IMG/VR virus record: IMGVR_UViG_3300013120_000738
Location: 62,001-126,000 of that record
Strand: one strand, 5' to 3'
Length of the DNA: 64,000 nucleotides
Shown here: piece after piece, positions 21,048 through 60,726 of the stretch
How the letters are laid out: every line of letters starts with the position of its first letter
Numbering within the stretch: position 1 is the stretch's first letter
The notes under the pieces: model-generated
Database searches by the model: none
Told to the model about the DNA's origin: nothing
What the model saw: the letters and a program-made list of their open reading frames with translations, nothing else
Translations under genes and position numbers: made by a program

Positions 21048-21174
21048 GAGTACTCTCCTACCTTTATGGACGTCACCCAACTTATATACACTATAATCGG
21101 ATGAAGGTTTCGGTTCTAGAATTGAAATACGTTTGGTTTGCCCCTCAGACCGAGGGACGTCTTTTGCGCGGTGG

Positions 21175-34839: not shown

Positions 34840-36657
34840 ATGTTAGAACTCAAATCCGTCGAGTGGCGTAATTTCTTATCATACGGCGACTACGACACCC
34901 GCCTAGATCTAAGTAGTCTTGGCCAATGCTTGATTACTGGCGAGGTCATAGATGATAGTAAAGACATCTATGATGACGCCAACCCTATGTCTATCCGCAA
35001 ATCAAATGGGGCAGGGAAGTCAACCATACCCAGTGTAATCCAATGGGTGCTATTCGGACGGACAATGCACTCAGCAAACCCCGGCTCGAGAATAGTAAAT
35101 TGGTTCACCGGCAAGGACTGCAGAGCCCGTGTGGAATTCAAAAGTGGTGATAGTATTACCAGGATACGGACTACCACGGGCAACACAGAGTTGATATATG
35201 TCAAGGATGGTAACGAAGAGAAAACCACTGCAAACACCCTATCAACGGCCGTCAACCAACAAGCCCAACTAGCTAGACACTTCAATCTGGATTGGGATTT
35301 CTTCTGCGGCTCCGCATTCTTCAACCAGTATAGCAAACCATGGCTAGAAATGGCCGACCAATCACGGCGAAAGGCCATAGAGAGGGCACTACATGTTGAT
35401 AGGTATCTCTATAGGGCTAAGGTAGCAAAAGGGAAGCATACTGCACTAGAATCAACAATCGAGACAGATAAACAGCGTATTGCCAATATTGAAATAGAAA
35501 TCACTAGATTAGAATCAGTCATAGAAAGACTGAAAGTATCCTCCAGCGAATTTGAACAGGGTAGACAGAAGCGAAAGCAAGAACTTCTGTTACTAGCCGT
35601 AGAAGAGAAGAAAAAGAGAGATGCGATAAAGGTACCAGATCGTGACGCACTACGTAAGAAATGGGCCGTAGTAGAGCAAATCCAAGGAAAACTCAATGAA
35701 CTAGAATCCCAAGAACTGCAACTCTTCAGGGCCATCAGTAAGCTAGAGGGTGACGCCAGATCAGTCCAAGAAAGGATTAATAAATGGGAACAGAAATCTG
35801 GCAAGATGTGTACTAATTGTGAACAGACTATTGCAACAGATCATGTCTCAGCAAGGGTTGAACCACTTCAAACACGATTAGCCCAGATAATGCACCAGAT
35901 AGAGGAATCGAACGAGGAGAGAACTAAATTAAAGAGTACTATCGAACATGTAAAACAAGCTGTGGCAGAGAAGAAACCAGAACACACTGTCAAAGAGGCA
36001 ATAAGAATACATGATGAGTATTGCAGACATGATAGGGAGATGAAACGTCTAAAGACCGAAGCAACTAAAGAAGAGAAAAACCCTCATAAGAGATCCCTAC
36101 AAGAAGCTGAAGAAGGTCTTAAAAAGCAAGAAAAGCTCTTAGTAGGACTACGAGAGAAAGTTGAACAAGACAATTTCTTAGCCCGCCATTATTTCTATAT
36201 CTATAAGGCCTACAATGATCGGAATAAGATCAAGAGTTTTGCCTTCCAGGATCATATTCCCTTTATCAATACTAGGTTAAAGCATTATCTCGATGTTTTT
36301 GGCCTCGATATTGAGGTTTCATTGACATCAACACTTGGTATATCTAGTAATCTATGGGGATATGAATTTGAGTCTGGCGGGGAGCGGAAGAGGACTGATG
36401 TGGCGTTTATGTTGGCGATGTTTGATTTTCATGAGCATATGTATGGTCGCCAGTGTAACGTATTAGTTCTTGATGAGGTTGATGGTCGCTTAGATGATGA
36501 TGGTATAGATTCTCTGATTAATATAATTAAGAGCGATCTTGCTTCTAGGGCTGAATCAATCCTGATCATTTCTCATAAGGATCATATGCAGGATACGTTC
36601 CCGCGTGAGATTAGGGTTGTGAGGACTGAGAGGCTTTCCCATCTGAAGGCGGCATGA
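34840..36657 (+). CDS. sbcC: Rad50/SbcC-like ATPase (gp46-like)
   Basis: NFLSYG, NGAGKST, coiled coils with CTNC zinc hook, SGGE signature, LVLDE, ISH. Confidence 0.94.
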   Translation: MLELKSVEWRNFLSYGDYDTRLDLSSLGQCLITGEVIDDSKDIYDDANPMSIRKSNGAGKSTIPSVIQWVLFGRTMHSANPGSRIVNWFTGKDCRARVEFKSGDSITRIRTTTGNTELIYVKDGNEEKTTANTLSTAVNQQAQLARHFNLDWDFFCGSAFFNQYSKPWLEMADQSRRKAIERALHVDRYLYRAKVAKGKHTALESTIETDKQRIANIEIEITRLESVIERLKVSSSEFEQGRQKRKQELLLLAVEEKKKRDAIKVPDRDALRKKWAVVEQIQGKLNELESQELQLFRAISKLEGDARSVQERINKWEQKSGKMCTNCEQTIATDHVSARVEPLQTRLAQIMHQIEESNEERTKLKSTIEHVKQAVAEKKPEHTVKEAIRIHDEYCRHDREMKRLKTEATKEEKNPHKRSLQEAEEGLKKQEKLLVGLREKVEQDNFLARHYFYIYKAYNDRNKIKSFAFQDHIPFINTRLKHYLDVFGLDIEVSLTSTLGISSNLWGYEFESGGERKRTDVAFMLAMFDFHEHMYGRQCNVLVLDEVDGRLDDDGIDSLINIIKSDLASRAESILIISHKDHMQDTFPREIRVVRTERLSHLKAA

Positions 36658-43022: not shown

Positions 43023-43319
43023 TTGCTAGCATGTATTGGAAAAAAGGGTATTCCTCCTTTACAGGGTGGTCATATGAAAACTAAACCATACAACACCGAC
43101 ATTCCGCCAGAGTTAAAACAACTTATTGCTGACCACCAAGAAGCAATAGTAATACTTGTCGACAAGAGTGACAAAGAAGACTATGATACAAAAGTGTCAG
43201 CATTCGTGAAAATGTTAGATAAAGATAGCAAACTTGCCAACTTACTTGCTGACATATTAGAGAATCTACATGCACAGGAACGTCGTTGCATCCAGAGTGA
43301 AACCGTTGGTAGTCCGTAA
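43023..43319 (+). CDS. Hypothetical protein (start probably 43074)
   Basis: Helical ORF coupled to the downstream gene. Confidence 0.6.
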   Translation: MLACIGKKGIPPLQGGHMKTKPYNTDIPPELKQLIADHQEAIVILVDKSDKEDYDTKVSAFVKMLDKDSKLANLLADILENLHAQERRCIQSETVGSP

Positions 43320-44217
43320 ACGGTCTGCGATTAACGTTCCCAAGACTGTCAAAATAGTTGCAAAGCCAAAAGCCGAAAAAGTACTAGATTTAAAAGACAT
43401 TCGGCGAATAGAACCACGCAAGGCAGTACGCACACCTCCCGCCGCTTCCGTCGCCCAATCCAAAATTCTAAGGCGACATCGCAATATCAGGCGCAAGACC
43501 CAAGTCCGATACGAGACAAGAGAGCCATCCTATGGGTCGATCGAAAAAATAAAAGCCCTACAAGGAATAGGTTGTGGGAATATACTAATAATATTAGGGA
43601 ATGGCCCATCATTATTAGAAGTATCAGATATCGACCTTAAGAATATTAAAGAACACGATAAGATCCATACCCTAACAGTCAATAAACCAGACGAGCGAAT
43701 TTGGCCGACAACATATTGGGCATTCTTCGATTATTCACAACTAAGACGCCATGAGGACTTATGGAATTCCTATCATGGCACTATGTTTAATTCTACAGCT
43801 ATACGAAAACAAAAACAATCTTCTATGCAATTTAAGAATCATAGAGGGCAAGGCTGGAGTAAAGACCCAAGCAAAGGGATTTATATCGGACGATCATCAG
43901 TTTATGCTTCAATGCAGATAGCAGCATGGATGAATTATGATCATATTTATATATTAGGCTGCGATATGAATCCTAGCGGAATAGATGGTAAATTACATTT
44001 TTATGGCGTCAATCCAGATGTCGAACCAGAATTACGGGCTAAAAGATTTGCAAAAGAAGCAGAATGGTATGATACAGCAGCAGTAGTATTAAGCCCAGAA
44101 GAAAGAACTAGATTTACTTTTGTGACCGACTACAATCCTTGGGACTTTGTTAAGAAATTCGGGAATATAACGCATAGAGACTTAACACCCATAATAGAAC
44201 ACGCTAATCGACTCTGA
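43270..44217 (+). CDS. Maf/DUF115 (MptE-like) domain protein, putative CMP-sugar transferase
   Basis: IILGNGPSL, SS.YA.MQ.A.WM.Y..IYILGCDM, HFYG. Confidence 0.75.
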   Translation: MHRNVVASRVKPLVVRKRSAINVPKTVKIVAKPKAEKVLDLKDIRRIEPRKAVRTPPAASVAQSKILRRHRNIRRKTQVRYETREPSYGSIEKIKALQGIGCGNILIILGNGPSLLEVSDIDLKNIKEHDKIHTLTVNKPDERIWPTTYWAFFDYSQLRRHEDLWNSYHGTMFNSTAIRKQKQSSMQFKNHRGQGWSKDPSKGIYIGRSSVYASMQIAAWMNYDHIYILGCDMNPSGIDGKLHFYGVNPDVEPELRAKRFAKEAEWYDTAAVVLSPEERTRFTFVTDYNPWDFVKKFGNITHRDLTPIIEHANRL

Positions 44218-44231: not shown

Positions 44232-44765
44232 ATGAGTAAGCCTCTAAAATCTCTAAAGAAAAGAAGCCAATTACCAGAGCTACTTAACGAACTAGGTTTA
44301 ACGGGTTTTGGTATCGAGCTAGGCGTCGCTGCCGGTCTTTTTTCATCTCTGATTTTAAAGAAAAGTCAACTACAATTATTATTCTCCGTGGATCTCTGGG
44401 GTACTCGTTGCCACGATGATGAGCAATATAAAGCAGTAGTTGATAAATTATCTGAATTTGGTCAAAGAAACGCAATCTTAAGATTAAGCTTTAGCGAAGC
44501 TGCTCGTCTTTTCCGAAATGATCTGTTTGATTTTATCTATGTTGACGGGAATGCCAGAAAAGGCCAGGAAGGCGGAAAGACGCTTCACGAATGGTGGCCC
44601 AAATTAAAAAGTGGCGGGATCTTCGCTGGTCACGATTATGATAAAGAACACTGGCCATATAATGTTGAAATGATAGATGCCTTCGTAGAAGAGCATCATT
44701 TAACACCAGAAGACAGATTTTCCTCATGGTATTGCCAAAAAGGACTTGATCGGAGAATAATATGA
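44232..44765 (+). CDS. Class I SAM methyltransferase (Methyltransf_24-like)
   Basis: GIELGV..G.FS, VDLW, FDFIYVDG, WWPKLK.GGI.AGHDY. Confidence 0.88.
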   Translation: MSKPLKSLKKRSQLPELLNELGLTGFGIELGVAAGLFSSLILKKSQLQLLFSVDLWGTRCHDDEQYKAVVDKLSEFGQRNAILRLSFSEAARLFRNDLFDFIYVDGNARKGQEGGKTLHEWWPKLKSGGIFAGHDYDKEHWPYNVEMIDAFVEEHHLTPEDRFSSWYCQKGLDRRII

Positions 44766-45148
44766 ATAAGGTTTATATTGCGACGAGATTACATAATGCG
44801 GCTAGAGCACAAGAAATAAAGGAGAAACTCTACGCATTAGGTATTGAGATCACTTACGACTGGACCAAGCATGGACAAGTATATAGTGAGGAGGAATTAA
44901 GAGCCTTCGGTGAAGAGGAAGAAAACGGAGTAAGGACGTGTGATGTCCTTCTGATGATATTTCCAGGTGGATGCGGTAGTCATTGGGAAGCAGGCTTAGC
45001 CAGAGGTCTTAATATACCTATCGTACTTCTAATGGAGAAAGAAGTAGAACAAAAAACCTTTTATTATCTTGATGGTGTGCATCAAACAAAAACAGAAGAT
45101 GAAGCCATCAAGAAAGTGCTCACATTGTTAGGGAGATCCGATGTTTAA
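44762..45148 (+). CDS. Nucleoside 2-deoxyribosyltransferase / dNMP N-glycosidase family protein
   Basis: KVYIA, YDWT, V..CDVL, GGCGSHWEAGLA (catalytic Glu). Confidence 0.8.
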   Translation: MNKVYIATRLHNAARAQEIKEKLYALGIEITYDWTKHGQVYSEEELRAFGEEEENGVRTCDVLLMIFPGGCGSHWEAGLARGLNIPIVLLMEKEVEQKTFYYLDGVHQTKTEDEAIKKVLTLLGRSDV

Positions 45149-45839
45149 CAAATTAGAACTTGATGTAATGCAAGCCAATGAATTAATCGAAGCAGCTAAT
45201 CTAGCAGCTAAGTATAAATTCCCAGCGATTGTGGTTCACCCAGCTATTACGTCAGAAGCTATGATGGCACGTGGTAGAGCTGGCGGGCAATATAAAATTA
45301 TTACACCAGTAGACTGCCCAAAAGGTGAAGTCTTCGGCATGACAAAATTTAGGGGCCTATCAACAGATGCCTTAGATGCTGATGGTTTTGAAATTATGTT
45401 GACTGCCGGGAAAACAGTCACAGATACAAGAAATGAAGCCAAATCTCTAACTGACTTTATCAAACAACATCTCACAGAACTAACAGAAGTAAGATTTGTG
45501 TTTGGTGTTTTCTCGAGAACCGAAGAAGATATAGCCACATTATGTGAAGCTTTGTTGGACGTCCGGATGCCAGCGATGATCAGGACTGACCATCAACTTA
45601 AATTACAAATAAGCAAAGCCAACGCAGATACACACAATCAAGTAATAGATAAAATCCTCGAGAAAGTAAAGGTTCCTATCAAATTATCAGCAAATATCAA
45701 TAGTGTGCGTACAATCACTTCTTGCGATAGAGCATCTAGGTTTGCTGTTAATGTATTACAAGCAAAGGCAATAATTAAGGAATTCCAGAACCAACCACAA
45801 GAGTTAAGAGGAATGCTCGAAAGTGGATCTCCTCAGTAA
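45141..45839 (+). CDS. DeoC (deoxyribose-phosphate aldolase)-like TIM barrel, probably catalytically altered
   Basis: A.KY.F.AIVV.P, KI.T.V..P.G....K, ADG.E, IKLS, A.R follow the DeoC pattern; Schiff-base KTS appears as RTD. Confidence 0.6.
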   Translation: MFNKLELDVMQANELIEAANLAAKYKFPAIVVHPAITSEAMMARGRAGGQYKIITPVDCPKGEVFGMTKFRGLSTDALDADGFEIMLTAGKTVTDTRNEAKSLTDFIKQHLTELTEVRFVFGVFSRTEEDIATLCEALLDVRMPAMIRTDHQLKLQISKANADTHNQVIDKILEKVKVPIKLSANINSVRTITSCDRASRFAVNVLQAKAIIKEFQNQPQELRGMLESGSPQ

Positions 45840-46179
45840 TGTAACATGTCCTGATTGTGGTTTAAAGCATAGTTATACCTATTCTGATACTTATTGTGAA
45901 CCTAATAGAGTATATGTTGATTGTATATATTGTGGAACCAAAATTCAAGTAGCAGCGTCAGAAGAAGTAACAGAAAGAAAACCAATAGAAGAAGAGATCC
46001 CTGTATTAGAAACAGGGACGGTTGTACGAGTAACAAACGAACAACACGTTTGGCATAACCAAATAGGCATAATAAAAGACAAGAAACACAAACACTACAG
46101 AATAGAGATATTTGGGGCACTTCTGTGGGTTCCATCTGATTGGGTAGAAGAACATGAGCTTAATGATGCTAATCCATGA
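45823..46179 (+). CDS. Zinc-ribbon + KOW/SH3-like protein
   Basis: CPDC...CIYC; GTVVRV......QIGII. Confidence 0.65.
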   Translation: MDLLSNVTCPDCGLKHSYTYSDTYCEPNRVYVDCIYCGTKIQVAASEEVTERKPIEEEIPVLETGTVVRVTNEQHVWHNQIGIIKDKKHKHYRIEIFGALLWVPSDWVEEHELNDANP

Positions 46180-46534
46180 GCTTGGCGATGATGCCGACCT
46201 CTTAGTAAGGCAAGACTCTTGGCTGGAGCAACAACGGAGAGAAACAGCCACCAAATTAGATAGACTGACAAGTGAATTGCGGTCTATAATATTAGCACAA
46301 CGTATCAAAAGCACACTACAACAAAGAAATATGGTCGCCGTCTTAGATGACGAACGCGATCAACAGGGTGAAATAGCATGTCTAAGTGTCCTCATCAAGA
46401 ATCTCCCAGATGCCCTAAAAGACTTTGACAGATCAAGACATGACCCCAATAAAAGACTTAGTGCCGGTGCCCAAATAGCAGGGTGGAAAGCTGATGGACA
46501 CGACGTAGAAGCATCAAGAGCACTAAGAGATTAA
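46154..46534 (+). CDS. Hypothetical protein
   Basis: 126-aa ORF within the operon. Confidence 0.65.
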   Translation: MSLMMLIHELGDDADLLVRQDSWLEQQRRETATKLDRLTSELRSIILAQRIKSTLQQRNMVAVLDDERDQQGEIACLSVLIKNLPDALKDFDRSRHDPNKRLSAGAQIAGWKADGHDVEASRALRD

Positions 46535-47328
46535 CACATACAATCCCTACATAATTCTATATCACATCTCTGTGATTGAAGGTGCTTCTGGCGTATCTCA
46601 TTATATCGTGTATTATACCAGATGTCATATATTGGTGTAACATGTGTATTCCCCACAACTTCCTTACCTTCAATATCAGCATGGCATAACGCAACATCAC
46701 CATTTACTAATATTGTCATATTAGTCCATAAACGAGAACATACATCTGTAGATAATTTCCCCCTTGTTGCTATAGATATATCAGCCCAATTATGAAACTT
46801 TGCAAATTTGACACCAGGAAATAATTTCACAGTCCTTCTTTGATCATCAGTATTACAACATCGTATCCTCACATTGACTGGTGATCCTAATTTTCTATTT
46901 AATGCAATAAAATTATAAATATTATCAAATACTCGACCATACTCTAACGGATATCTAATCCTCTCAAATTCCTCTATACTAGACCCATCAACGCTAAAAG
47001 TTATCTGCTCTAATCCAGCCTCAATCAAAGCTTGTGCATATTCATTATTAAGTAATGATGCATTGGTAAAAAGTCTAGGTTTGATACCACACTTTGCCAC
47101 ATATATTACCTTCTCTATTAATGTATCATCTAAAAGAGGTTCCCCAAAATTATGAAGATGTATAGCCCTGCATTTTCGCCTGCACTGATCAACTAGAGTA
47201 ATAAAGAATTGATAATCCATGTATTGTACTTTACGTTGCATCTTCCTATGAGCACACATTATACATTGTGCATTACAAGCATTTGTCACCTCGATTCGAA
47301 CTGTTGGTGGGAAATTTGGTAATTTCAT
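46531..47328 (-). CDS. Radical SAM/SPASM-domain protein
   Basis: CNAQCIMC, GEPLL, TNASLL, SVDG, C..LW....I..NG.V.LC..D......GN, C..C. Confidence 0.93.
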   Translation of the reverse strand: MKLPNFPPTVRIEVTNACNAQCIMCAHRKMQRKVQYMDYQFFITLVDQCRRKCRAIHLHNFGEPLLDDTLIEKVIYVAKCGIKPRLFTNASLLNNEYAQALIEAGLEQITFSVDGSSIEEFERIRYPLEYGRVFDNIYNFIALNRKLGSPVNVRIRCCNTDDQRRTVKLFPGVKFAKFHNWADISIATRGKLSTDVCSRLWTNMTILVNGDVALCHADIEGKEVVGNTHVTPIYDIWYNTRYNEIRQKHLQSQRCDIELCRDCMC

Positions 47329-47412: not shown

Positions 47413-48579
47413 ATGCAATCTGGAACGTTCAATGTAGTTACCGATGGACAATGGGGCTCCTGTGGAAAAGGTTTGATATCAACAGCAATCGCCGACAGAT
47501 ATCGACCAAGCGTCATATCAACGACCAATATGGCAAATGCGGGGCATACCGCAGTCGATAGTGATGGAGCCACATTCATAGCTAAGGCCCTACCAGCCCC
47601 AGCAATTCTTGGAAAATGGCGAACTGATTATCTTCCATATATCGTAATAGGACCAACAGCCGCATTTCATGCCAAGCAAATGGCAAAGGAAGTCGCCGAA
47701 ACCGAATGTGCTCCAAGGCTCGTGATACATCCAAGAGCGGGCATAATCACAGAGCAACACCAAGAAATCGAGAATCAACTCAAAGGTGGGACAAAACACG
47801 TCGCTAGTACCATGCAAGGTTGTGGGGCATTCCTTGCCGACAAGATTATGAGGCGGCCAGATTTGAAGCTTGCAGGCGATACAGAATTCACCCAATACTC
47901 AGGGTATACTCTCGAAAAAGCACTCGCGGCATGTTTACGTGGTACAAAATGGCAAAGCCTCTGCGTAGACTTATCGATACCACGCATATTACAAATGTTC
48001 ATGGAGGTGGGCAATACTATCCTACATGAAGGATCTCAAGGATTCAGCCTGGATATTAACCACGGCTCACATTATCCTCAGTGCACCAGCAGAAGCACGA
48101 CGGCTATGCAAAACATGGCCGACATGGGTATTACTCATCATCACATGGGTAGAGTAATATTGGTCATCAGGCCAGCGCCTATTCGCGTCGGTAATGTAGT
48201 TGAAGGTGGTAAAACTGTAGGATATTCTGGCGATTGTTATCCTGACCATACAGAAACAACTTGGGAAGCTATTGGTGAGGCTTGTGGAGCACCACAAGAA
48301 ACGTTTAAAGGTGAATTAACTACAGTCACAAAAAGATTACGACGGGTTTTCACGTTCTCCGATATCCAATTTAAGGAAGCTGTTGCGATTAATGGAGCGA
48401 CCGAGATTGCTCTTAATTTCGCAAACTATATTGATTGGAAGTGTTATGGAACTAATAACCCAAACAATCTTCCTCCCAAAGTCACCGATTTCATAAAGAA
48501 ATTAGAAGATCTAGGTGGCGTCAAAGTCACTATAGTTGGCACTGGTCCAAGAAACGACCATGTTTGTTTCTTAGACTAA
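47413..48579 (+). CDS. purZ: PurZ, N6-succinyl-2-amino-dAMP synthetase (adenylosuccinate synthetase-like, 2-aminoadenine pathway)
   Basis: DGQWGSCGKGL (Ser at the PurA Asp13 position), NMANAGHT, EGSQGFSL, YPQCTSR, R..PIRVG, SGDCYPD, ELTTVTKR.RRVFTFS..Q, LNFANY (replaces PurA TKLD). Confidence 0.9.
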   Translation: MQSGTFNVVTDGQWGSCGKGLISTAIADRYRPSVISTTNMANAGHTAVDSDGATFIAKALPAPAILGKWRTDYLPYIVIGPTAAFHAKQMAKEVAETECAPRLVIHPRAGIITEQHQEIENQLKGGTKHVASTMQGCGAFLADKIMRRPDLKLAGDTEFTQYSGYTLEKALAACLRGTKWQSLCVDLSIPRILQMFMEVGNTILHEGSQGFSLDINHGSHYPQCTSRSTTAMQNMADMGITHHHMGRVILVIRPAPIRVGNVVEGGKTVGYSGDCYPDHTETTWEAIGEACGAPQETFKGELTTVTKRLRRVFTFSDIQFKEAVAINGATEIALNFANYIDWKCYGTNNPNNLPPKVTDFIKKLEDLGGVKVTIVGTGPRNDHVCFLD

Positions 48580-49065
48580 TTGCGATCAAATCTACATCAT
48601 TTCCACACGTACCTATTTTGGATGGGAATGATGAATCGCAAAAAGAATGATGCTAACTATAGAAATAATCTCCGGAAAGCAGCTAAGGCTGCCGGAATGT
48701 CTTTTAAAGCATATAGAGCTTCTAGGTGGGAATCAGTAGGATGGACATATGCTGTGGAGACAGTAAGAAAAAGATGTAAAAGACGCGGTATTGAGTGTAC
48801 TATAACACCAGCTATAGTAAAAAACTTATGGGATAAACAAAATGGAATTTGTCCGATAACAGGCTGGAAAATGGAATTGCGTAAAAGTGGGATTGGATTA
48901 GTTCCAACCACAGTTACAATCGATAGAATAGATCAAAGTGTTGGTTACACACAAAATAATATTCGTCTTATTTGTTTCACTGCTAATAATGCAAGGCACA
49001 CGGGATCAGACGAAGATTTGCTTAAATTCTGTAAGGCAGTAGTCAATCATGCTCGAAGCGTTTAA
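48580..49065 (+). CDS. Free-standing HNH-superfamily homing endonuclease-like protein
   Basis: LW.KQNGICPITG..M...TIDRID...GY...NI.LIC..AN; same family as 2474-3025. Confidence 0.8.
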   Translation: MRSNLHHFHTYLFWMGMMNRKKNDANYRNNLRKAAKAAGMSFKAYRASRWESVGWTYAVETVRKRCKRRGIECTITPAIVKNLWDKQNGICPITGWKMELRKSGIGLVPTTVTIDRIDQSVGYTQNNIRLICFTANNARHTGSDEDLLKFCKAVVNHARSV

Positions 49066-49894
49066 AGTCGCTGCATATCTAGACGAAGCCGGGGAAGACC
49101 CGGCTACGGCCTGCAAAGTCCTGAAGGAATTGAATATCCATTATGCAGTCTTGCGTAGAGCATGGGTCAATAATATTCTAGAACTAAGCGACCGTGGATG
49201 CAAGAAGTTAAGAGATATATTAGAAGAATATGAAGTAACACCTATAGCATTAATAACTACATTGGGAGAAGTCCCAGCTCCAAGTCTTGTGTCCTTAGAC
49301 CAAGAATATATTCAAAGAGCATTCAATTTAGCGTCATATTTCAAGACGCCGATTGTAAGAATCCAGATAGGTACTAAGGTCAAATCAGATGTTACTGCCG
49401 AAGTTGATTGGTGGATGGAGTATATTAAGCAACAATCAATTGCACATAATATATCACCGGTATTCGAGATAACTCCAGATTCTATCTATATAAGGCCTAC
49501 AGATATAGCCGCACTACTTGCCAAGCATAGGAAATGGCAATTATTATATGATCCCGTACAACTTATACTAAAACAAAAACAAGACCCATTTGTCCGCTTT
49601 TGGTCCTTACTGAAGAATAGAACTGCTGCTATAGATGTGCGGGATCATAAGATAGGTAGAGGATTTAAACCTGTTGGCTTTGGTGATTCTAATATATTGT
49701 TAACACTAGTCGACGTGATAAATACACAATACAAGGGATGGTTATTTCTAGAACCAAATCTTGGGAGGCGACACGGATCACACAACACCAAAGAAGATGT
49801 CTTCAAAATGAGTGTTGAAGCCATTAAATTTGGATTACAATCAAAGTTAGGGGTGAATGATGATAAACCTAAACGAAGCGATCCAAAGGATTAA
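49049..49894 (+). CDS. Sugar-phosphate isomerase/epimerase (xylose isomerase-like TIM barrel), partly degenerate
   Basis: DEA..D, LR, IVRI, FE, YDP, IDVRD (His lost), G.GD, Y.GW..LEP. Confidence 0.7.
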   Translation: MLEAFKVAAYLDEAGEDPATACKVLKELNIHYAVLRRAWVNNILELSDRGCKKLRDILEEYEVTPIALITTLGEVPAPSLVSLDQEYIQRAFNLASYFKTPIVRIQIGTKVKSDVTAEVDWWMEYIKQQSIAHNISPVFEITPDSIYIRPTDIAALLAKHRKWQLLYDPVQLILKQKQDPFVRFWSLLKNRTAAIDVRDHKIGRGFKPVGFGDSNILLTLVDVINTQYKGWLFLEPNLGRRHGSHNTKEDVFKMSVEAIKFGLQSKLGVNDDKPKRSDPKD

Positions 49895-50069
49895 GAAGGC
49901 AGGTAGCACAAACGTTCGTGCAGTACCAATGCCAGGTAAAAATGTAAATGAAGATCATCAAATTGAGATAAAAGAAGGGAACACGTGGCTTCCGATAGTA
50001 GACGGAATACCCAGAAGCGCTGCGATGGATATCATTAACCAAGCCACAAATAGAACAATTCTGGGTTGA
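49857..50069 (+). CDS. Small hypothetical protein
   Basis: 70-aa ORF within the operon. Confidence 0.65.
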   Translation: MMINLNEAIQRIKKAGSTNVRAVPMPGKNVNEDHQIEIKEGNTWLPIVDGIPRSAAMDIINQATNRTILG

Positions 50070-50500
50070 TGAACAAGAAGATTACTTCAGTATTAGAATT
50101 ATCAAGATACAAAGTCGGTCACAAGGCCTGGTGGGTTGTGCTGCGCTACTCATCACCAATCCCACAATTAAATAGTGATGAAGAATGGATGCTTCATACA
50201 CACCCAAAAACAATCTATTCAGGCCCATATAAAAATACTTGGCAATCTAAAGCTAAGCTACCTAGACTACATCATTCAGACTTCAATATTGTTGTTTCAC
50301 TATTATCCTCTGAACTAGTAGTAGAACCATTCGTGATTAATAGAATCACCAGAAGCAATCAGACTGGTGAATTTTATTATGCTAATGCGGATGACGAATG
50401 GATGCCAGAATCTTGCCTTTGCGACTCTCAAGCAGCCGCCGTAAAGGAAAGAAGCAGAATACTAAGATTAATGAATAAATGGCTTGCCGAAGCTAAATAG
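50066..50500 (+). CDS. Hypothetical protein
   Basis: 144-aa ORF, coupled to the upstream gene. Confidence 0.7.
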   Translation: MMNKKITSVLELSRYKVGHKAWWVVLRYSSPIPQLNSDEEWMLHTHPKTIYSGPYKNTWQSKAKLPRLHHSDFNIVVSLLSSELVVEPFVINRITRSNQTGEFYYANADDEWMPESCLCDSQAAAVKERSRILRLMNKWLAEAK

Positions 50501-51061: not shown

Positions 51062-54000
51062 ATGTCTACAGATGCCTTCGATGACGTAAAAAGACCTATT
51101 AAAGGTCAAATGCGCGAGATCTCACAAGCTACCCACGTAGAAGTAATTTCTGCTCAACAAGAAATTATAACCCCAGCATTTGGATTACCATCGCCAAATG
51201 TCGAAGTAGCTATGCGCGGTTTAGCGTATGGGAAAACTCAAAGAGTCACATCACCTCAAGAAGTAGGCTCAATCACCCCAATTCCACCTCCTTCAGGCTC
51301 ATTAAGTTCAAGTGTTGTAACAGCATCTGCTTATGGCCTAACCGGAGATGGGGCGACAGCGTTCAAAAAGACTGCAGCCGGTTTACGTTATGCTAAAGAG
51401 AGTTCGAAATTACGAACGGCATTAACCAATACTGCGTTTGGTGTTGTTAAACAAGACATATTCTATTCAGGATCTCCAGATCCGTGTTCGGAAGATCCTG
51501 CAGATAACTGTAAAGTAGATCTAGCAGTTGTCTTGGATGATACTGGTAGTATGGGTGGTACTATCAACGGTGTCAAAAGTGGTATCCAAGGAGTTGCTGA
51601 TTTAGTCGAATTAGCTGTTGGTCAGAATTACCGTTTTAGTTTAACAACATTCAAAGACAGCGTCACAACTAGATTACCTTTTAGCAATCTATGCGGATCA
51701 GCATCGCTAACTGCATTTAAAAGTGCCGTTAACGGAGTAGGTGCTAGTGGTGGTGGTGACGGTCCAGAATGGTCAGCAGCAGCCGTAAAACATGCGGCAG
51801 AAGGTAGAGCTGGAAGCTGGCGGGAAGGTAATATTGTACGAGTACTAATAGTACTAACTGATAATATAAATAATTATGGGGTTGGATCAAGTGTAGATTC
51901 CGGAGTATCAGTCAATGCGGCGGCTTCAGCATGTGCGGCTATGAATATCAGAGTCATTTTTGCTGGTACACCTATGTGGGGTACTATGCTAAATGAAGCC
52001 GATACCTATATCAGCATGACCGGCGGGGTTATGATCCAGACTGCTAGGGATGGTCTGGGCGTTGATACTCTATTAACAAGTTACATCTTCGCCCTCTGTG
52101 GTGCTGGTGAGCCGCTTTCCCCAGAATGTGAAGGCGGTATCGATAAGATAGTAAACGGTAAATTCGATACTGGTATAGAAGGGTGGATAGACAAGACGAC
52201 TCTATCGGGGCGATCAATAGCCTGGTATGATACCGATGAACGTAAAGCACTTGAATTGGACGGTGCTGCCGGACAAACAGCGACAGGTATGGAAGGTGGA
52301 GACCTAGTCGTACTTGGATTAGATGTCTTAACCGAGGTTGTTCCACCTACCTCTTCTGCGGCCACAGATCTCCGATCACAGGCGGCGCTTGAACTCCCAG
52401 AAGGATATTCTATAATAGAACATGCACTATGGGATACAGGTGCATTATTACCAGGCCCTAATAATACTGGTGCCACACTTGGTTGGGTAGGTCTTGGTGC
52501 TCATGTCGTAGATCATCCGCCACTCGAGAAAAGATTACAATTGACAGGGTATAATGATGGGTTTTCTACTAGTACTTTCGATGACAAATACGTAGCAGCT
52601 ACGGCCGATGGGGATATTAATATATATGACACGGATGGGACATACGAATCTACACTACTAGCAACGTCTGATCATATAATCAACGTAGAAATTGATATGG
52701 TTCGCGGCCATGTCTTCTACCTTATAAATGGCCAAGAAATTTACAGAATGAATTATGATGGTACTGGGTCACCAATACTTATCGCGTCTCATGTCCCAAT
52801 AGGTGGACAAATATATGCATTCGATATTGACCCAATCAATAATGTTCTAGTACACAGTTCAGTCCGTGGCACTACCTATGAGATATTAATCAACAATTTA
52901 GATAATCACGTCAATCCAGGAACACCAACTGGGTACCGCGTAGCCAGGACAACAACCGATGAGGTAACACATATAAAAATAGATACCAATTCCGGACATA
53001 TTTATTGGATAGAAGAAGGCGTCGGAACAGCGTCATTAAAGAGAGCCTCTTACGACGGAGATGTACAAAATATTGTAACTGATTTATGGGGTGGGTCAGG
53101 GACCGGCAGTGAAAGAGTTTCTGGCATAGATATAGGATTCGATCCAGCCAATCCTATAGAGACTACTATTTATTTGAGTTTGATAAATGTTTCAACCGCA
53201 TCAATCGCTAAAGTAAGAATTGAAACACTTGCTGATAATACAATATCATCAGTCACATATACTGAGACCTTTATTGATTGTGGGGGTGCTCCTCCGCAAG
53301 ATGTCCTATTCGACCCGATTGCTGGTAGAATTGTAGCACCACAAGGCCCAATAGAAGATGCGGGCCAAGTAGCACAATATCTATTAGGCGGTAGAAGTAC
53401 ATCACCAACATATTTCCAGCCATCACCAACCAAAACACCAAGAAGTGTTAAAAGAATCATCACAAACGGGGCGGCGATAGCCCAAACATTTGCGGTCGCT
53501 ACTGATGATCTTTTCGCATTTTCAGCCAATATCGATACAGTAACAGACGGTTCAGTTATTATCCAACTAGTAGATGGTGACACAGTACTAAATGAAGCAT
53601 ATTATAATCCAGGTGCCACATCATTTGCCGCCGTCCCAGATATTCCCGCAGTTGTTATTAACGGAGAAACAGAAAATACATTTACCAGATTTCGCCCGCA
53701 AGTCCTTGGTGGGACTGTACTAGATCGCAGTGAATACCCTGTTGTTGTGAAATGTGGGCATGGAGGAGTGCCATATTTTGGTAGTGGTGTGCTAATAACA
53801 GATAGGCATGTTTTAACTGCAGCTCATGTTACTTATCGCGCTAGTGGTACTGCATTAGCCGACAATGAACAAATAGTACAAGTCTATACTGGGGGTTCAC
53901 CGCCAGAAGTGAATATGCTCTCCAGAAAGATTTATAGACATCCTGACTGGAATCCAGCCGCACTTTCTGATCCTAGTCTATTAGGTCTAGACACCACAAA

Positions 54001-57000
54001 TGATATAGCAATAATCGAACTTGCCGGAGGTATACAAGGCCTTAGTCACGGTGACGCGGGACCACCTGGGTCACCAGTTATGGGGCATCCATTAATTTCA
54101 TCAGACTTATGGGGCGGTAGAGACGCTGACCCTGTGGTAGGCGATGATATAGATGTCTATGGTTATGGACCAGGAGAAGTACCATTTGATCCAGACGATT
54201 ACGGGATATTGAGGCGTGGTACTACTGAAGTTGAAGAAGTCACAAGTACTCTGATTAAATGGCAGTATATGCCAGGTGAAGAAACAACATTGCCTGGTGA
54301 TTCCGGTGGACCATTGATGGTTAATAAAAGTGGTCTGATCCATGTTGTTGGTGTTGTGTCTGGTGGTCCAGCGTCACCGGGGTTTGGCGGTGGGATTCAT
54401 TTTAATACCAAAGTTTCTGCATATGCAGAGTGGATATATGGTATTATAAATGGTCCGCAAATAACAGCAACCGTACCAGAAAGTGGGCAAGTAACCGCAG
54501 TTGTCAGATTGGTATCAAATAATGGTGTGCTAGGCGAAGCTGATATTGAAGCAGCATTGACAACATATCAGACTGGTGTACCATCAGGTCTTGGTAGACT
54601 GAGATACCAACTTAGAAACAGTAGTGAAGCTGTATTAGCTGGCGATAGTGTAACAATAGAAGACTTACAACCAGCTGGAGAATCAACAAGATTTAACATT
54701 TCTGCTGAAGTGCCGTCAGATGGCGAAGTAGAAGTGTTCTTCACTGCTGAGGATGGTGGTGCCGCAAAATTTATTGTCGATAATGTCTTGTTATGTCTGT
54801 CTAAAATAGATGATTGTGGCCCAGGCCAACGTAATGCCGTTCTCAATCCGAATTTTGAGAGAGGAGTTGAAAATTGGACTGATGGTACTGGTGTACCATT
54901 ACCAACGACAGATAGATTATATTGGGACCAAGATATTCAAGCTATTGTCACCAGCCTTGCTGGAGCTCCAGAAATACGGACCGCAATAACCGACCTAAGA
55001 CCAGATACTAATATGGTTCTGGACTTTGAAATCGCGGTTATGAGTCCGGCTACTATTCCTACTCTGACATTGGCATTCGGTGCCAGAAATATTTCTGGTG
55101 ATATTCTAGCATCTGACACGATAACGCTTGGTGATATAGAACCGCTACCAGCAAGAGTACAAGTAACATTCAGCGCACCCGCCGATGGCCAAGCCATCAT
55201 CTTTATGAAGAGTGGTGGTCTTTCAGGGCTTGAATATAGCGGTACCACAAAGATCCGCAATGTTTTGGTTTGTAATCAGGCTGGTAGATGTGAATCAGGG
55301 TATGATAGGATATCATACGACGATTTTGAACTTAGTAAAGGTACTTGGAGTGGTGGTACACTTAATGCAATAGATGGATCAGTAACATTAGGGGCTGCTT
55401 CCGGAGCGACTCCTGGCGAAACCTTATCACAAAGCTTTACCGACATCACTCCAGGCACCGAATTTCAATTAACGTTTAACAGTATAACTAATGCAAACGG
55501 TGTAGGAAGATATTTAGTATCATTCATCCACGGAAGTGTAACAGATCAGTTTACAACTGATGGTGCTGCTGGGATCAAGACCTATGAGATCGTAGCCCAA
55601 GCAGACATAATAACAGTGCGCATCCGTAATCTAGCAGAATACGATGCGGATCTCGATGACATATTAATATGCGAAAAAGCTCCACCACCTTGTGATGGTA
55701 GTATAGAAGGATTGAGAGGACATGTTGAATTTAAAGGTATCCCGCGACGGCCAATAAATGTGTTCAATGCTATCGCAAGATACACAATACGAGACCCAGA
55801 TGACCCATTTGACGTATCAGAAGTAACACATGCAGCAGAAACGGAAGGACATCTAGGTGCGGCCACGTGCGATTTATGGAAACAGCAAGGTGATGGAGGA
55901 TTTGCAAGAACTGATGTTCTAGGCTCTAACCTCACGTTGATAAATGATATAGATGATGGAGATTTAGTAACCATAACATCCAGACCAAATTGGCTGTGGT
56001 CTATACCACAAACTGGAGATCTTGGTCAGGATTCGCTTATTATTGAATTCCCAGATCCTCCGAGTGGGTTGATAGAATCTGTTGACATATACCTGTTAAT
56101 GAACCGTATCGAACCCAGCGGTTCAGACACAGCCCCAGTTTACCCACCTCCGCTAGATTGCCTACCAGACCCTGCAATCCAGCTCAATACACTTATATCA
56201 TTCACCAATAGCTTGGGATTGAATAAAGAATTCAGCGTGACTAAAGATTTGGCAGATTTGTTAGAAGAAGAAACGGATTATACTCCGGGTTTCGGACGTC
56301 CTCCTTGGGATACAGATACGCCTTTAGGACTTGGGTTTTCTGGCACTACAGCGAGATGGGAGAAATTCAGTTTCCCACTTGATTTGCCAGATGGTAAAGG
56401 TCTTGATCAATGCACGACCCCAATATTCTTTTCAGCTATCGGCACAGGCCAAATCAACTTTGGTGAATTTTATATATCGACTACAGGCGGTATTTTTGTT
56501 GACCCTTGTGAAGCTGTTATCGAAGTAGAAGAGATTGGTTCTGGATCGGCAACTAACGAAATCCAATCAATAAGAGTCCCCGCATCAACAGGTGGATCAT
56601 TCGATATCAGCCTCACATACAGTGGCACAACAGATACTGTTACTGTCCCATATGGGTCAACAGCAGCTGAATTAGCAGCAAAACTGGCCGAACTTAGTAA
56701 TATTGGTAATATTGCTAATGTTAGTGTAGGTGGCACAGGCTCAGATATTGACCCATACCTAGTAGAATTCACTGGCAGCCTAGCTGGTGTTGATATGCCA
56801 TACCTGATACCTGATGGTACCAACCTAGAAGGTGCGGCAAGTGCCTACGTTGTTACTGATTTCGATGGTACACCTAATGAACGAAAGACAGTTGCAAAGA
56901 AAATAACCACCACGAATGACTTCTTTATCACATTCGAAGGTGTCACATCAGTCCCATTTGCCCATAGCGAACCGATTGGTATCTTCGAGGCCAAATTGGA

Positions 57001-60000
57001 ACTGATGAGTACTATTGGGGCTGGAAATGTCAGAGTCACCGGAGACATAACTGATAGAGATGCTCTATATGAGGGACCATGGTATATTGAATTCATCAAC
57101 GTCTTAGGAAACCAAAACGTTGCAGAATTCACGATAGATCCAGCCACTGATTATTCAGTCGTAACGGATTGGACAGGCGGGCCAGGAGAAGGAAAAGACG
57201 AAACACAAACAGTCCACGTGAGTGCTTACGGTGGTACTTTTAAGCTCAATATTGCAAACCCTGATCACGAAGCTACTGATATAGAAATCGTAGAAGCTAG
57301 AAAAGGTAGTGCCGGAGGAGGAGCAACTGTAAATGAAGAACAATGGGTAATGGCAAGCATCGATAGCTCATGGACAGAATACTCCTTAACACCTAGTGGT
57401 ACAATTACTGGCGGAACATTCGACCTTACTATTGATGGTGTAACCAAAACAGCAATTCCCTATAATATTACAGCATATAATCTACACGAATTATTCTGGA
57501 GTAATTTCCCAAAATATGATTTCCATGTAGATGGTGGTGCGACTGGTGCAGATGCAGTATTATTAGCACATCAATACGGAGTTCACTTAAACTTCATTGG
57601 TAATGTCAGATACAATTCTCATACGATCACTGTTGATAGCACCAATTTAGTAGGTGGATCTTATAGTATCACAACCAATCTTGCAGGTGCAAGTTTGGGT
57701 ACTGATCCATGGGCTATAGCAGGAGCATTTAGATTACAATATGACCCAGGAGGTGGAGGTACTCCAGAAACCACAGGTGATATAGCAGTTGGTGCAACTG
57801 CTACAGAAGTGCGAACAGCACTAGAAGCATTACCAAGCATAGGTGCGGGAAATGTTGATGTTGCCTATAATAATGGTTCAGTAGCTGTTGAATTTATAGA
57901 TGCTCTTGCGGGAACTGATATAACAGGTACTCTCGAAATGAGCACTCTTCCCACCAATGCAATATCGTCCGTAGATCGTGTCGCACGAGCAGGATATGGT
58001 AGTGCGGCACAGAATGAAAGACAAAATATCTCATTCACTAGTCCACCTACCGGCGGGACATTCACATTATCATTCGATGGTGGGACAACTAGTGATATAG
58101 CTTATGATGCAAGTGCTATAGATGTCCAATCCGCATTGGAAGCACTTGGTTCAGCTATCGTATCAGTTGAGGAGACAATAAAAGGTGCCGAAACTGGTGC
58201 GTACGATATAACACGATGCAGCTATGACTCTATATCACACGCTTTTGCAGAAGATAATGCTGTACGTGGAATATTCTTTAAGCCAGATGGGCTCCAGATG
58301 TATGTTACTGGTGCTCAGAATGACAAGATTTACCAATATTACCTAATTGATTTCGCACCTCCAGGTGCTGGTATGCCAGATTGGCCGATGCCATGGAATG
58401 TATCATTTGCCGAGTTTGTGGGAGAATTTGATATTTCCTCGCTTGAAACTACTCCTACTGGTTTATTCTTTAGCCCTGATGGTAGAAAGGCCTATATATT
58501 AGGCCCCGATAGTAATACTGTCTGGCAGTTACCACTATCAAGTCCATGGGCTATTTCATCAGCTAGTGTTCCTCCCTCTGCGTCGCTTAATGTGTCTGGG
58601 GAAGATGCTACGATGACAGGTATCTTCTTTAAGCCTGATGGCAGTAAGATGTATCTTGTTGGTGGAACCGATGATAAGGTATACCAGTATTCATTATTAC
58701 CATGGGATATATCGACAGCGACATATGAAGCCAAGTCCTTTAGCGTTGTCCTTCAAGAACCATTCCCATATGATGTATGGTTCAATGCTGATGGTGACAA
58801 GATGTTAATCATCGGTAGTGCTTTCAATGTGATCAACCAATACGCACTGTCAACACCATGGGACGTATCAACAGCAAGTTTCGGTTCCAAACAATGTGAC
58901 GTCTCATCACTAGAGCCAGATCCCACAGGCATGGCCATAAGCCCCAGCAGCCATAAATTATATGTTGTTGGTTCTAATAGTACTGTCTACCAATTCTCAT
59001 TCATGATGCCAGCAGATGAAGTACAAACAATATCTGCAGTTGGAACACCAACATCTGGTACATTCTCACTAACATTTAATAGTGAAACAACCACTTCCAT
59101 CCAATATGATGCTGCAGCTGCAGACGTTCAAAGTGCATTAGAAGCCTTACCAAGTTTCAATGCTGGTGATGTAGTTTGTGGTGGTGGCCCACTTCCAGGT
59201 GATAATATCACTGTAACATTCCAGGCAGCATACGCTGGTACAGATGTTGACTTACTGATCGTTGGTGGCAATTTCACAGTAACCAAAGTCGGTGATGTTT
59301 GGACAGTGGAATTTAGTGGCACATATGGTAACCAAGATGTCGATCTAATGACCGCCGATACCTCCGGTATTACTGGTAGTGCAGCTACGGTATCTGTAGG
59401 TCCAGTAGATTTCGATATTGGACCAGAGCTCCTAAGGACTGAAATAATCAATGCAGCACCGTTTATAACAGGAGCTGATATCGCAGTCACACGAACGATC
59501 TACGATCCAGTAACAGGCAATTTTGAGTGGCAGATAATATTCGCTGGGCAACATACTCAGAAGGACATCGAACAAATAACACTAGACGATAGTGGTCTTA
59601 GTGGTGTAAGCATCGAAGTTATCGAAGAGGTTAAAGGTATCGGTGCCACAGAAGTACAAAATTTGTACATCAAATTGGCTACTGGTGGGACATTCAAATT
59701 AACCGTGACTGCGGCCGGAGTAACCGCCACCACCAGTTCTATTATATGGAACACCACAGCGGAAGGACTAGAAGCACAATTAAACGCGTTGCCTATGTTC
59801 GTCGATGTTGCTAATGCAGTGACAGTCACAGATCTCGGGGCTAGTGATGATCCAGATATAATAGCACAATTTAAAGTAGAGTTTTTACAAGCCTTCGGCG
59901 ATATCCCCGCTATGTTCTCGCCTGACGCTGCTGAAGCATTACTATGTAATCCTCTGGTATTACCACCAGTAGATGAAGGTCCTTACCCATACCCATTACC

Positions 60001-60474: not shown

Positions 60475-60726
60475 ATGTCGTTTGAAGATATCCGAATCCA
60501 CCGTGATATTCCGATTATTGATGGTCATATGGCAATACCACCAAATAATCCAAGGAATAATCAGAGTACCGACCCAAATACTTTTGTCAATGGAACGAGC
60601 CACGAAATAGTAAGGCTTACCGTAGGATCAGGAGCCCAAACAGGGGCAGATTTCGGTAACCAGGAATTTGTTAGGCTTGAGGGGATACGGCCTGATCAGT
60701 GGTATGACAGTGATCCACTAGCTTAG
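60475..60726 (+). CDS. Small hypothetical protein
   Basis: GGAGG SD before ATG 60475 (MSFEDIR). Confidence 0.7.
   Translation: MSFEDIRIHRDIPIIDGHMAIPPNNPRNNQSTDPNTFVNGTSHEIVRLTVGSGAQTGADFGNQEFVRLEGIRPDQWYDSDPLA

Follow-up and report, generated by a model that had tools for sequence, protein, structure and literature searches.

A PurZ-type gene on the DnaE-encoding contig of a very large uncultured phage

The phages characterized so far as replacing adenine (A) with 2-aminoadenine (Z) in their DNA are siphoviruses or podoviruses with genomes of 38–83 kb, which fall into seven groups and use DatZ, MazZ, DUF550, DutZ, or DmtZ together with DpoZ or PrimPol (PMC12884076, PMC8342488). Z synthesis is started by PurZ, a homolog of adenylosuccinate synthetase (PurA), as in cyanophage S-2L (PDB 7odx), vibriophage phiVC8 (6fko/6fm1), and Acinetobacter phage SH-Ab 15497-like phages, whereas Arthrobacter phage Wayne and Gordonia phages use PurZ0 with DutZ, DmtZ, and DUF5664. 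Here, we examined a 64,000-nucleotide stretch (hereafter, the window; positions 62,001–126,000 of IMGVR_UViG_3300013120_000738) of the 289,811-bp uncultured phage contig Ga0117909_1000009, in which a first-pass annotation had proposed a PurZ lacking its usual partners in a jumbo phage encoding a family-C polymerase. Its observation was confirmed, with one correction concerning a family-A polymerase-like gene outside the window, whereas its interpretation, that a very large phage wholly or partly replaces A with Z using a different polymerase and possibly different dATP-removal chemistry, was only partly supported. Literature searches joining PurZ, 2-aminoadenine, or adenylosuccinate synthetase with jumbo, huge, or megaphage, or with DnaE, returned nothing relevant in a library that did not cover subscription-only papers.

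The open reading frame (ORF) at 47413–48579 (+ strand, 388 aa, ATG start) is real and contains each of the motifs noted in the first-pass annotation: GQWGSCGKG at residues 12–20, SGDCYPD at 272–278, RRVF at 310–313, and LNFANY at 334–339. It matched Pfam Adenylsucc_synt (5.9e-34) and PHROG 1211, ‘2-aminooxy adenylosuccinate synthetase’ (3.8e-59), and the best solved structures were PurZ of S-2L (7odx, 2e-39) and phiVC8 (6fko, 4.5e-37), ahead of archaeal PurA (4e-31) and E. coli PurA (3e-17), which is far beyond chance. We judged the signature residues against published structural work (PMC8342488; bioRxiv 2025.10.22.683976). Ser16 stands where PurA has the catalytic Asp13, a replacement that accommodates the 2-NH2 of dGMP, and an aromatic residue lies two positions before it (Trp14, against Phe12 of VpPurZ). 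YPQCTSR, R258–V259, and TTVTK (in TTVTKRLRRVF) line the dGMP pocket, and a 12-residue insertion found only in PurZ follows IRVGN, as in S-2L and Acinetobacter PurZ. N335–F336–x–N338–Y339 corresponds to the ATP-type donor pocket, aligning with N305/F306/Q308 of S-2L and F295/N297/Y298 of phiVC8, whereas PurA, PurZ0, and 60+ cellular short PurA-like proteins keep an Asp at the N338 position. The first-pass annotation correctly noted SC in place of the usual ST in the P-loop: GS[CTE]GKG occurred in all 14 full-length clade members fetched from IMG/VR, and within the clade SC is the majority, with ST and SE also occurring. However, Ser at the Asp13 position is not by itself diagnostic, because many short PurA-like proteins of Planctomycetota, Acidobacteriota, Geobacteraceae, DPANN archaea, and CPR bacteria have GSEGKG or GGEGKG. 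These share the short archaeal-type architecture and the PIRVG and TTVT motifs, but they keep the Asp of the GTP-type pocket (x-L-x-x-x-D-Y), lack the PurZ insertion and SGxCYP, and form separate clades; thus, the ATP-type pocket and the insertion are what discriminate.

In phylogenetic trees with PurA, PurZ0, and PurZ references, a check that the first-pass annotation had itself set, the protein belonged to a monophyletic clade (support 100/99) found only on large uncultured phage contigs of up to 439 kb. In a careful IQ-TREE search, this huge-phage clade was sister to S-2L, phiVC8-like, and Acinetobacter PurZ (99/95; 95/91 with Bacillus phage PurZ), whereas PurZ0 lay elsewhere (100/100) and PurA was distant; a quick tree of 100 rows agreed. 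The best 120 homolog clusters were 55–66% identical, nine of them on contigs above 200 kb, and of 16 IMG/VR loci, 15 lay on contigs of 84–408 kb and one (L013) on a 19-kb contig. No relative above 37% identity was found in 185,579 species genomes and none above 40% in 50,697 phage records, against which a megablast of window positions 45–52 kb also gave no match. Relatives carry inteins in the NAGH|T and YPQ|CTSR active-site motifs, many representatives of 730–1200 aa matched in 2–3 stretches, and an HNH/EndoVII-like homing endonuclease (48580–49065, +, 161 aa; PHROG 3322 ‘endonuclease’, 5.9e-24, plus HNH and EndoVII families), found only here and in related locus L011, is inserted just after purZ. 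Such inteins and homing endonucleases mark these purZ genes as conserved and probably important.

Compared with PurZ of S-2L, phiVC8, and Acinetobacter phages, the protein has the same fold and family, the Ser replacement, the same dGMP-pocket residues (YPxCTSR, RV, TTVTK, SGxCYP), and the same ATP-type pocket (NFxN/QY), with the insertion after IRV(G/A)N shared with S-2L and Acinetobacter. However, it is only 31–37% identical to them, its P-loop differs, and it has extra insertions (about 5 aa after the KALP motif and about 13 aa after W-E-x-V-A) and a PurA-like C-terminal segment, shared only with PurZ of Bacillus phage vB_BpsS-140; moreover, the genomes are 150–440 kb instead of 38–67 kb, no adjacent datZ or mazZ and no DpoZ or PrimPol was seen, and a DnaE replicase is present. 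PurZ0 was considered and rejected on its different motifs and clade: identity was 25–27%, and the protein lacks GSEAKG and the GTP-type Asp. Against PurA, it shares the superfamily and catalytic scaffold (GKG P-loop, NAGH catalytic His, and QG and RR motifs) and is short like the archaeal form, but identity to Salmonella PurA was 25–27% and LNFANY replaces the GTP-specific TKLD. An ordinary PurA-like auxiliary metabolic gene boosting AMP, and so ATP/dATP, synthesis from IMP during infection might be suggested by the Pfam match and by source databases naming relatives ‘adenylosuccinate synthase’, and huge phages often carry nucleotide-biosynthesis genes. Nevertheless, this reading is very unlikely given the residues and the strongly supported placement within PurZ, and a published S-to-D mutation result shows that this position controls selectivity (bioRxiv 2025.10.22.683976).

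We next searched for the classical partners. Pfam scans of all window ORFs of at least 60 aa revealed no HD-domain or MazG-like gene. phmmer searches with 17 reference accessory proteins (MazZ, DatZ, DUF550–DUF5664, DmtZ–DutZ, Dut-like proteins, DpoZ, and others; DatZ, MazZ, and DUF550 from S-2L, phiVC8-like, and Acinetobacter phages) found nothing in the six-frame translation of the window or in 16 related loci, and a DatZ HMM plus HD and MazG regular expressions found nothing in the same DNA plus 46 kb of flanks, where precomputed Pfam annotations also showed none. These results cover 110 kb (38%) of the contig, and a DatZ or MazZ analog could lie in the remaining 180 kb or so (62%).

The family-C polymerase is real but split into two ORFs: 12314–13747 (−) holds PHP (Pfam 1.3e-33) and the start of the Pol III alpha core (DNA_pol3_alpha, 2.7e-19), and 8263–10968 (−) holds the C part (alpha, 4.7e-19; finger, 6.4e-28; HHH_6). 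They matched PHROG 405 at profile positions 42–439 and 440–1043, respectively, and are thus exactly contiguous; Rfam indicated no intron between them and no RNA family in the window. However, a small, divergent family-A polymerase-like gene (L096:4544–5737, 397 aa, in coordinates of flanking locus L096) lies about 5 kb beyond the left edge of the window on the same contig, and hence the ‘different polymerase’ of the first-pass annotation is not established. As the only family-A gene seen, it matched just the C-terminal palm region (Pfam 1.1e-11; Taq, E 0.002), gave no phmmer hit to three DpoZ references, and had no detectable exonuclease domain, unlike a DpoZ-type polymerase with its 3'-5' exonuclease domain. 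In addition, a DnaE replicase using dZTP would not be surprising: the S-2L Z-cluster expressed in E. coli put Z into chromosomal DNA, and most polymerases do not discriminate A from Z (PMC8342488). The chromosomal replicase of E. coli is the DnaE-type Pol III.

The most suggestive neighbor lies 2.3 kb upstream of purZ. The ORF at 44762–45148 (+, 128 aa) encodes an NDT-superfamily protein (PF05014, 5.3e-8) most like nucleotide (NMP) N-glycosidases: its family profile hit CMP N-glycosidase 4jen (1e-7), 5vto, and 4jem, including BlsM and MilB. Tyr5, Glu53, Asp61, Gly72, His74, and Glu76 (the last in G-[TS]-H-x-E-x-G, where the catalytic Glu is expected) were invariant or nearly so across 12 sequences, and the gene was upstream of purZ in 12 of 15 related loci. 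NDT-family enzymes are linked to Z synthesis biochemically through DmtZ (PMC12884076), and NDT and UDG domains are reported to be statistically associated with dZ-modified contigs (bioRxiv 10.1101/2025.10.22.683976); the window holds both, with a UDG-superfamily protein at 4193–4963 (−, 256 aa; PF03167, 4.2e-26). The PurZ0 systems likewise pair a PurZ-family synthetase with an NDT-superfamily protein rather than DatZ, the NDT member in both resembling nucleotide N-hydrolases (DNPH1/MilB-like; PMC12884076), although no Dut-like or DUF5664 gene was found in the DNA examined here. This conserved NDT-like gene makes a different dA-removal chemistry plausible, and its product is a candidate dAMP-removing enzyme; however, it has no detectable sequence similarity to DmtZ, and its closest solved relatives act on CMP, not dAMP.

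The adjacent ORF at 45141–45839 (+, 232 aa), conserved in 13 related loci, is predicted to form a (beta/alpha)8 barrel with the 2-deoxyribose-5-phosphate aldolase (DERA) fold (AF2 pLDDT 88, pTM 0.85); the top 50 Foldseek PDB hits were all DERA, the best at E 1.5e-11, with TM 0.72–0.78, whereas a BFVD fold search found no close viral counterpart. By strand order alone, the strand-6 Schiff-base Lys appears to be replaced by the invariant Arg148, while strand 7, which carries a relay Lys in class I aldolases, keeps Lys181, and hhalign against E. coli DeoC was not significant. Downstream of purZ, the ORF at 49049–49894 (+, 281 aa), conserved in nine loci, is a predicted xylose-isomerase-like TIM barrel resembling sugar-phosphate epimerases/isomerases (AF2 pLDDT 86): its top Foldseek hit was L-xylulose-5-P 3-epimerase UlaE (1.1e-10), followed by ketose epimerases. 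The protein also had a weak Pfam AP_endonuc_2 match. Endo IV was considered but rejected, as there are no conserved His ligands and Endo IV ranked only 47th. Other conserved neighbors without family hits were a 118-aa protein with a Cys-rich N-terminus (45823–46179, +; seven loci), a 126-aa protein immediately upstream of purZ in relatives (46154–46534, +; 11 loci), and two small genes of 70 and 144 aa (49857–50500, +; 9–11 loci). PHROGs gave no hit for eight of the ten conserved neighbors, and PDB profile searches were uninformative for the 232-aa, 455-aa, 250-aa, and 315-aa families. Conversely, a radical SAM + SPASM protein divergent from purZ (46531–47328, −, 265 aa; PF04055, 3.5e-13; PF13186, 2.3e-12) and a Methyltransf_24 methyltransferase (44232–44765, +, 177 aa; PF13578, 4.4e-10) are insertions specific to this genome, the former absent from this position in the related loci and the latter without a counterpart there. 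The conserved gene order also includes obviously unrelated genes and may thus reflect genome collinearity rather than functional coupling; in one clade member (L010), purZ lies beside portal genes with none of these neighbors.

Taken together, the identity of the gene, its signature residues, its phylogeny, its genomic context, and the absence of known helpers in the DNA examined rest on direct analysis, whereas catalysis and substrate specificity, the presence of Z in the DNA, the extent of replacement, and the roles of the neighbors are inferred. With moderate confidence, we consider that the enzyme condenses dGMP with aspartate, using ATP or dATP as phosphate donor, to give dSMP, which host adenylosuccinate lyase and nucleotide kinases would convert to dZTP for incorporation in place of some or all adenine. 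The gene belongs to a large, previously uncharacterized PurZ subclade confined to big uncultured phages, whose replication module is built around a split DnaE, together with DnaB, a gp32-like SSB, a FEN, an NAD-dependent ligase, and a small divergent PolA-like protein. The classical helpers were not found in the DNA examined, and exclusion of adenine, if it happens, must therefore work differently; the best candidate is the NDT-like protein, which could hydrolyze dAMP to adenine and deoxyribose-5-phosphate as DmtZ does, possibly assisted by the two barrels. No dATP-removing enzyme has been identified, however, and without one replacement might be partial or absent.

Indeed, a less likely alternative is that this genuine PurZ gives only partial or conditional replacement, or mainly drains dGMP, dATP, or ATP pools, leaving a mixed A/Z or mostly A polymer for want of a dATPase and a Z-selective polymerase. 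In E. coli, Z incorporation depended on the helper genes and was incomplete (PMC8342488; a bioRxiv preprint), and S-2L PurZ also works as a dATPase (PMC8342488), but strong conservation across a deep clade, the active-site inteins, and the conserved NDT-like candidate argue against it, and most of the contig lies outside the DNA examined. It is also unlikely that the protein has the PurZ architecture but a different physiological substrate or product, for example GMP or another 6-oxopurine nucleotide feeding a further base hypermodification or a non-DNA metabolite, with the N-glycosidase-like protein and the barrels belonging to that pathway. This would fit the low identity to characterized PurZ (at most 37%), the subclade’s own insertions and P-loop Cys, the solved NDT relatives being CMP hydrolases from nucleoside-antibiotic pathways, and a genome unusually rich in glycosyltransferases, sulfotransferases, epimerases, a CMP-sugar synthetase, a QueC-like protein, and radical SAM genes. 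Conversely, all residues contacting dGMP and ATP in the two PurZ crystal structures are conserved, including the Val and the insertion proposed to exclude the ribose 2'-OH, and no other known base-modification pathway was recognizable next to the gene.

A more speculative and doubtful possibility is that huge DnaE-replicating phages make Z-DNA with a third, undescribed accessory logic: instead of hydrolyzing dATP (DatZ, MazZ, DutZ), they would destroy deoxyadenylate at the monophosphate level through the N-glycosidase, channel the released deoxyribose-5-phosphate away through the DERA-fold and epimerase-like proteins, and copy a 200–440-kb genome with Z in place of A using a non-selective family-C replicase. 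A deep and abundant PurZ subclade on contigs of 150–440 kb would extend 2-aminoadenine DNA to huge phages, raise the largest putative Z-genome several-fold, show that a family-C replicase context is compatible with PurZ, and point to new helper enzymes, namely an N-glycosidase, a DERA-like barrel, and an epimerase-like barrel, of interest for nucleotide-pool engineering and for making Z-DNA in cells. Because Z-DNA resists many restriction enzymes and changes sequencing signals, such phages may also be under-sampled or mis-sampled in metagenomes. ARAGORN found no tRNA. A Metallophos protein (29241–30341) was considered as a possible dNTPase but rejected, as it is SbcD-like and an SbcC-like gene lies at 34840–36657.

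We first examined the ORF at 47413-48579 (+), which is real, begins with ATG and encodes 388 aa. Its translation contains each of the motifs reported in the first-pass annotation, namely GQWGSCGKG (residues 12-20), SGDCYPD (272-278), RRVF (310-313) and LNFANY (334-339), and the observation itself is thus confirmed. The protein matched Pfam Adenylsucc_synt (5.9e-34) and PHROG 1211, annotated as '2-aminooxy adenylosuccinate synthetase' (3.8e-59). Among solved structures, the two PurZ enzymes ranked first (S-2L PurZ, 7odx, E-value 2e-39; phiVC8 PurZ, 6fko, 4.5e-37), followed by archaeal PurA (4e-31), E. coli PurA (3e-17) and 7vf6, described as 'PurA-like' (2e-16).

We then aligned the protein with six clade relatives and seven references (S-2L, a phiVC8-like vibriophage (QH), an Acinetobacter phage, Bacillus phage vB_BpsS-140, the PurZ0 of Wayne and of Frizzle, and Salmonella PurA) and tabulated the functional motifs over 100 sequences. 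According to published structural work (PMC8342488; bioRxiv 10.1101/2025.10.22.683976), Y-C-T, R-V and a PurZ-specific insertion after that Val shape the dGMP pocket and disfavour a ribose 2'-OH, whereas N305, F306 and Q308 of S-2L (F295, N297 and Y298 of phiVC8) bind the adenine of ATP and would clash with guanine. The window protein has S16 where PurA has Asp13, the aromatic W14 two positions before it, YPQCTSR, R258-V259 followed by a 12-residue insertion, TTVTKRLRRVF, SGDCYPD and N335-F336-A-N338-Y339, and therefore carries all of these features. However, Ser at the Asp13 position is not sufficient by itself. A scan of 185,579 species genomes returned 72 short PurA-like genes from Planctomycetota, Acidobacteriota, Geobacteraceae, DPANN archaea, CPR bacteria and Mesorhizobium fusions, and nearly all of them have GSEGKG or GGEGKG, that is, Ser or Gly at this position; Mesorhizobium and Aminobacter versions are fused to an N-terminal domain of about 170 aa. 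These proteins, as well as PurZ0, keep an Asp at the column of N338, which is the GTP-type pocket, and lack both the insertion and SGxCYP. The ATP-type pocket together with the insertion is what sets PurZ and this protein apart.

The phylogeny was consistent with this assignment. In a quick tree of 100 rows rooted on Salmonella PurA, the huge-phage sequences were monophyletic (SH-aLRT 99), and in a careful tree of 56 rows their support was 100/99 (UFBoot/SH-aLRT). The careful tree joined this clade to one sequence from a short MAG contig (L024) at 97/87, a grouping not resolved in the quick tree, and then to classical PurZ (S-2L, phiVC8-like and Acinetobacter) at 99/95, a grouping that fell within a 34-row clade (92) in the quick tree. 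Addition of the Bacillus phage PurZ was supported at 95/91 in the careful tree and corresponded to the 34-row clade (SH-aLRT 99) in the quick tree. PurZ0 grouped elsewhere, with CPR proteins, in the quick tree and was separate (100/100) in the careful tree. Grouping with PurA, which had been named beforehand as an outcome that would overturn the PurZ reading, was thus not observed.

We next investigated how widespread the clade is. In a collection of 5.8 billion proteins, 2050 proteins matched at E<=1e-10; the best 120 clusters were all 55-66% identical to the window protein, and 15 of these were on contigs of at least 100 kb and nine on contigs above 200 kb, up to 438,712 bp. IMG/VR holds 16 loci, 15 on contigs of 84-408 kb and one (L013) on a 19-kb contig, and among 1.84 billion representatives at 50% identity, 322 matched at E<=1e-30. 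Conversely, all 198 tblastn hits in cultured phages were below 40% identity and were located in genomes of 38-83 kb, apart from one bacterial contig (Salmonella, 501 kb) filed in the phage collection, and nothing in the species genomes exceeded 37% identity. The closest cultured relative was the 55-kb Bacillus phage vB_BpsS-140 (36% identity, tblastn E 6e-59), whose purZ is followed by an HNH endonuclease with no annotated DatZ or MazZ within 6 kb, and which may be a tractable model for a DatZ-less PurZ phage. These results indicate a large, uncultured, phage-restricted PurZ subclade rather than a one-off, and we found no paper connecting PurZ, 2-aminoadenine or adenylosuccinate synthetase with jumbo, huge or megaphages, or with DnaE, in a library that does not cover paywalled work. 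In addition, intein-bearing PurZ genes seem common: in one relative (L015:6809-10504 (+), IMGVR_UViG_3300045256_000294), purZ is a single 1232-codon ORF carrying two intein-like inserts with LAGLIDADG motifs, one exactly at NAGH|T and the other at YPQ|CTSR, both active-site motifs, and many PurZ representatives of 730-1200 aa match in 2-3 stretches (further cases include the representatives P0121, P0122, P0125, P0131 and P0137).

The window is part of JGI contig Ga0117909_1000009 (289,811 bp), of which we saw positions 40.3-149.8 kb. The DnaE noted in the first-pass annotation is real but is encoded as two ORFs, 12314-13747 (-) and 8263-10968 (-), which match one phage DnaE profile (PHROG 405) at positions 42-439 and 440-1043, so that the split is clean. 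Three small ORFs (10941-12265), one with a C2H2-like zinc finger, lie between them, and an Rfam search detected no intron there; one related purZ locus (L011) has the same split. Beside DnaE lies a QueC-like protein at 7689-8279 (-) (PHROG 1550, 1.5e-28; C-terminal part only of Pfam QueC), but no QueD, QueE, FolE or DpdA was seen, so a 7-deazaguanine pathway is not evident. Other replication and repair genes included RecA, DnaB, a gp32-like SSB, a 5'-3' exonuclease, an NAD-dependent ligase, RNase H, UDG, SbcCD-like proteins, an XPD-like helicase and NucS. About 5 kb left of the window, we also found a family-A polymerase-like gene of 397 aa (L096:4544-5737 (-), on the flank of the same contig), which matches only the C-terminal palm region (Pfam 1.1e-11; Taq at E 0.002), has no detectable exonuclease domain, shows no similarity to three DpoZ references and recurs in related contigs, including that of purZ locus L005. 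None of DatZ/HD, MazZ/MazG, DUF550, DUF5664, a Dut-like protein or DmtZ was detectable by Pfam scans, single-sequence phmmer or a DatZ HMM, either in these 110 kb or in the 21-kb loci around purZ of the relatives.

In 9-13 of the 15 other loci, purZ sits in the same gene order: a 315-aa protein (faintly MptE/CstII-like), an NDT-like protein (128 aa), proteins of 232, 118 and 126 aa, purZ, proteins of 281, 70 and 144 aa, and a giant protein. The NDT-like family keeps the Tyr, Asp and Glu typical of the superfamily, and its profile hits nucleotide N-glycosidases best (CMP N-glycosidase 4jen at 1e-7, then BlsM and MilB). The 232-aa family is predicted with confidence (pLDDT 88) to fold into a TIM barrel whose 50 best PDB matches are all 2-deoxyribose-5-phosphate aldolases (E down to 1.5e-11, TM 0.72-0.78); however, by strand order, the Schiff-base lysine position holds the invariant Arg148, and the protein may therefore not be a canonical aldolase. 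The 281-aa family is a predicted xylose-isomerase-like barrel closest to L-xylulose-5-phosphate 3-epimerase. Three genes in this stretch are insertions specific to this genome, namely a methyltransferase (44232-44765), a radical SAM/SPASM gene (46531-47328, minus strand) and an HNH/EndoVII-like endonuclease (48580-49065). The giant ORF in the window (51062-60448 (+), 3128 aa) has VWA and trypsin-like protease domains and is conserved downstream of the purZ block in several relatives.

Two recent studies independently tie NDT-family enzymes to Z synthesis: one describes DmtZ, a dAMP hydrolase and dR5P transferase of PurZ0 phages (PMC12884076), and the other finds NDT and UDG domains statistically enriched on dZ-modified contigs and describes a dA-preferring NDT (bioRxiv 10.1101/2025.10.22.683976). 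The window has both an NDT and a UDG gene. At present, we cannot take the conserved gene order as proof of functional coupling, because it also includes unrelated genes and may be plain collinearity; one clade member (L010) has purZ next to portal genes and lacks these neighbours, and the NDT-like protein is not detectably similar to DmtZ.

Taken together, the interpretation given in the first-pass annotation is partly supported. PurZ identity is strong, and the claimed absence of DatZ and MazZ nearby holds for the 38% of the genome seen, whereas the use of a different polymerase is not established. What the sequence demonstrates is a PurZ-type active site; it is inferred that dGMP, Asp and (d)ATP would give dSMP, that host PurB and kinases would then give dZTP, and that the DnaE replicase would incorporate it, to an unspecified extent, in place of A. 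This aligns with the report that most polymerases do not discriminate A from Z and that E. coli chromosomal DNA took up Z when the Z-cluster was expressed (PMC8342488). PurZ-type activity is likely, and the presence of Z in the DNA, inferred from sequence alone, is somewhat more probable than not. That dA is excluded at the dAMP level by the NDT-like N-glycosidase, with the two sugar-phosphate barrels processing the deoxyribose-5-phosphate, remains speculative and is rather unlikely on present evidence. PurZ as such is already known; the new element is a PurZ subclade in huge phages with a non-canonical accessory set.

The genome is also unusually dense in glycosyltransferases, sulfotransferases, sugar epimerases, a CMP-sugar cytidylyltransferase and MptE/CstII-like proteins (window 4923-5624, 14344-15429, 21787-23181, 43270-44217 and 60671-61150; flanking segments L098, L116 and L117), suggesting an elaborate capacity for glycan (or DNA-sugar) modification. 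The NucS-type mismatch endonuclease (61166-61696 (+)) and a CsrA homologue (L099:15142-15351) are encoded near the purZ block. Furthermore, a 509-aa protein at 19950-21479 (-) matches Pfam Volactin, an actin-like family, at 2.2e-39, indicating that this large phage encodes an actin homologue.
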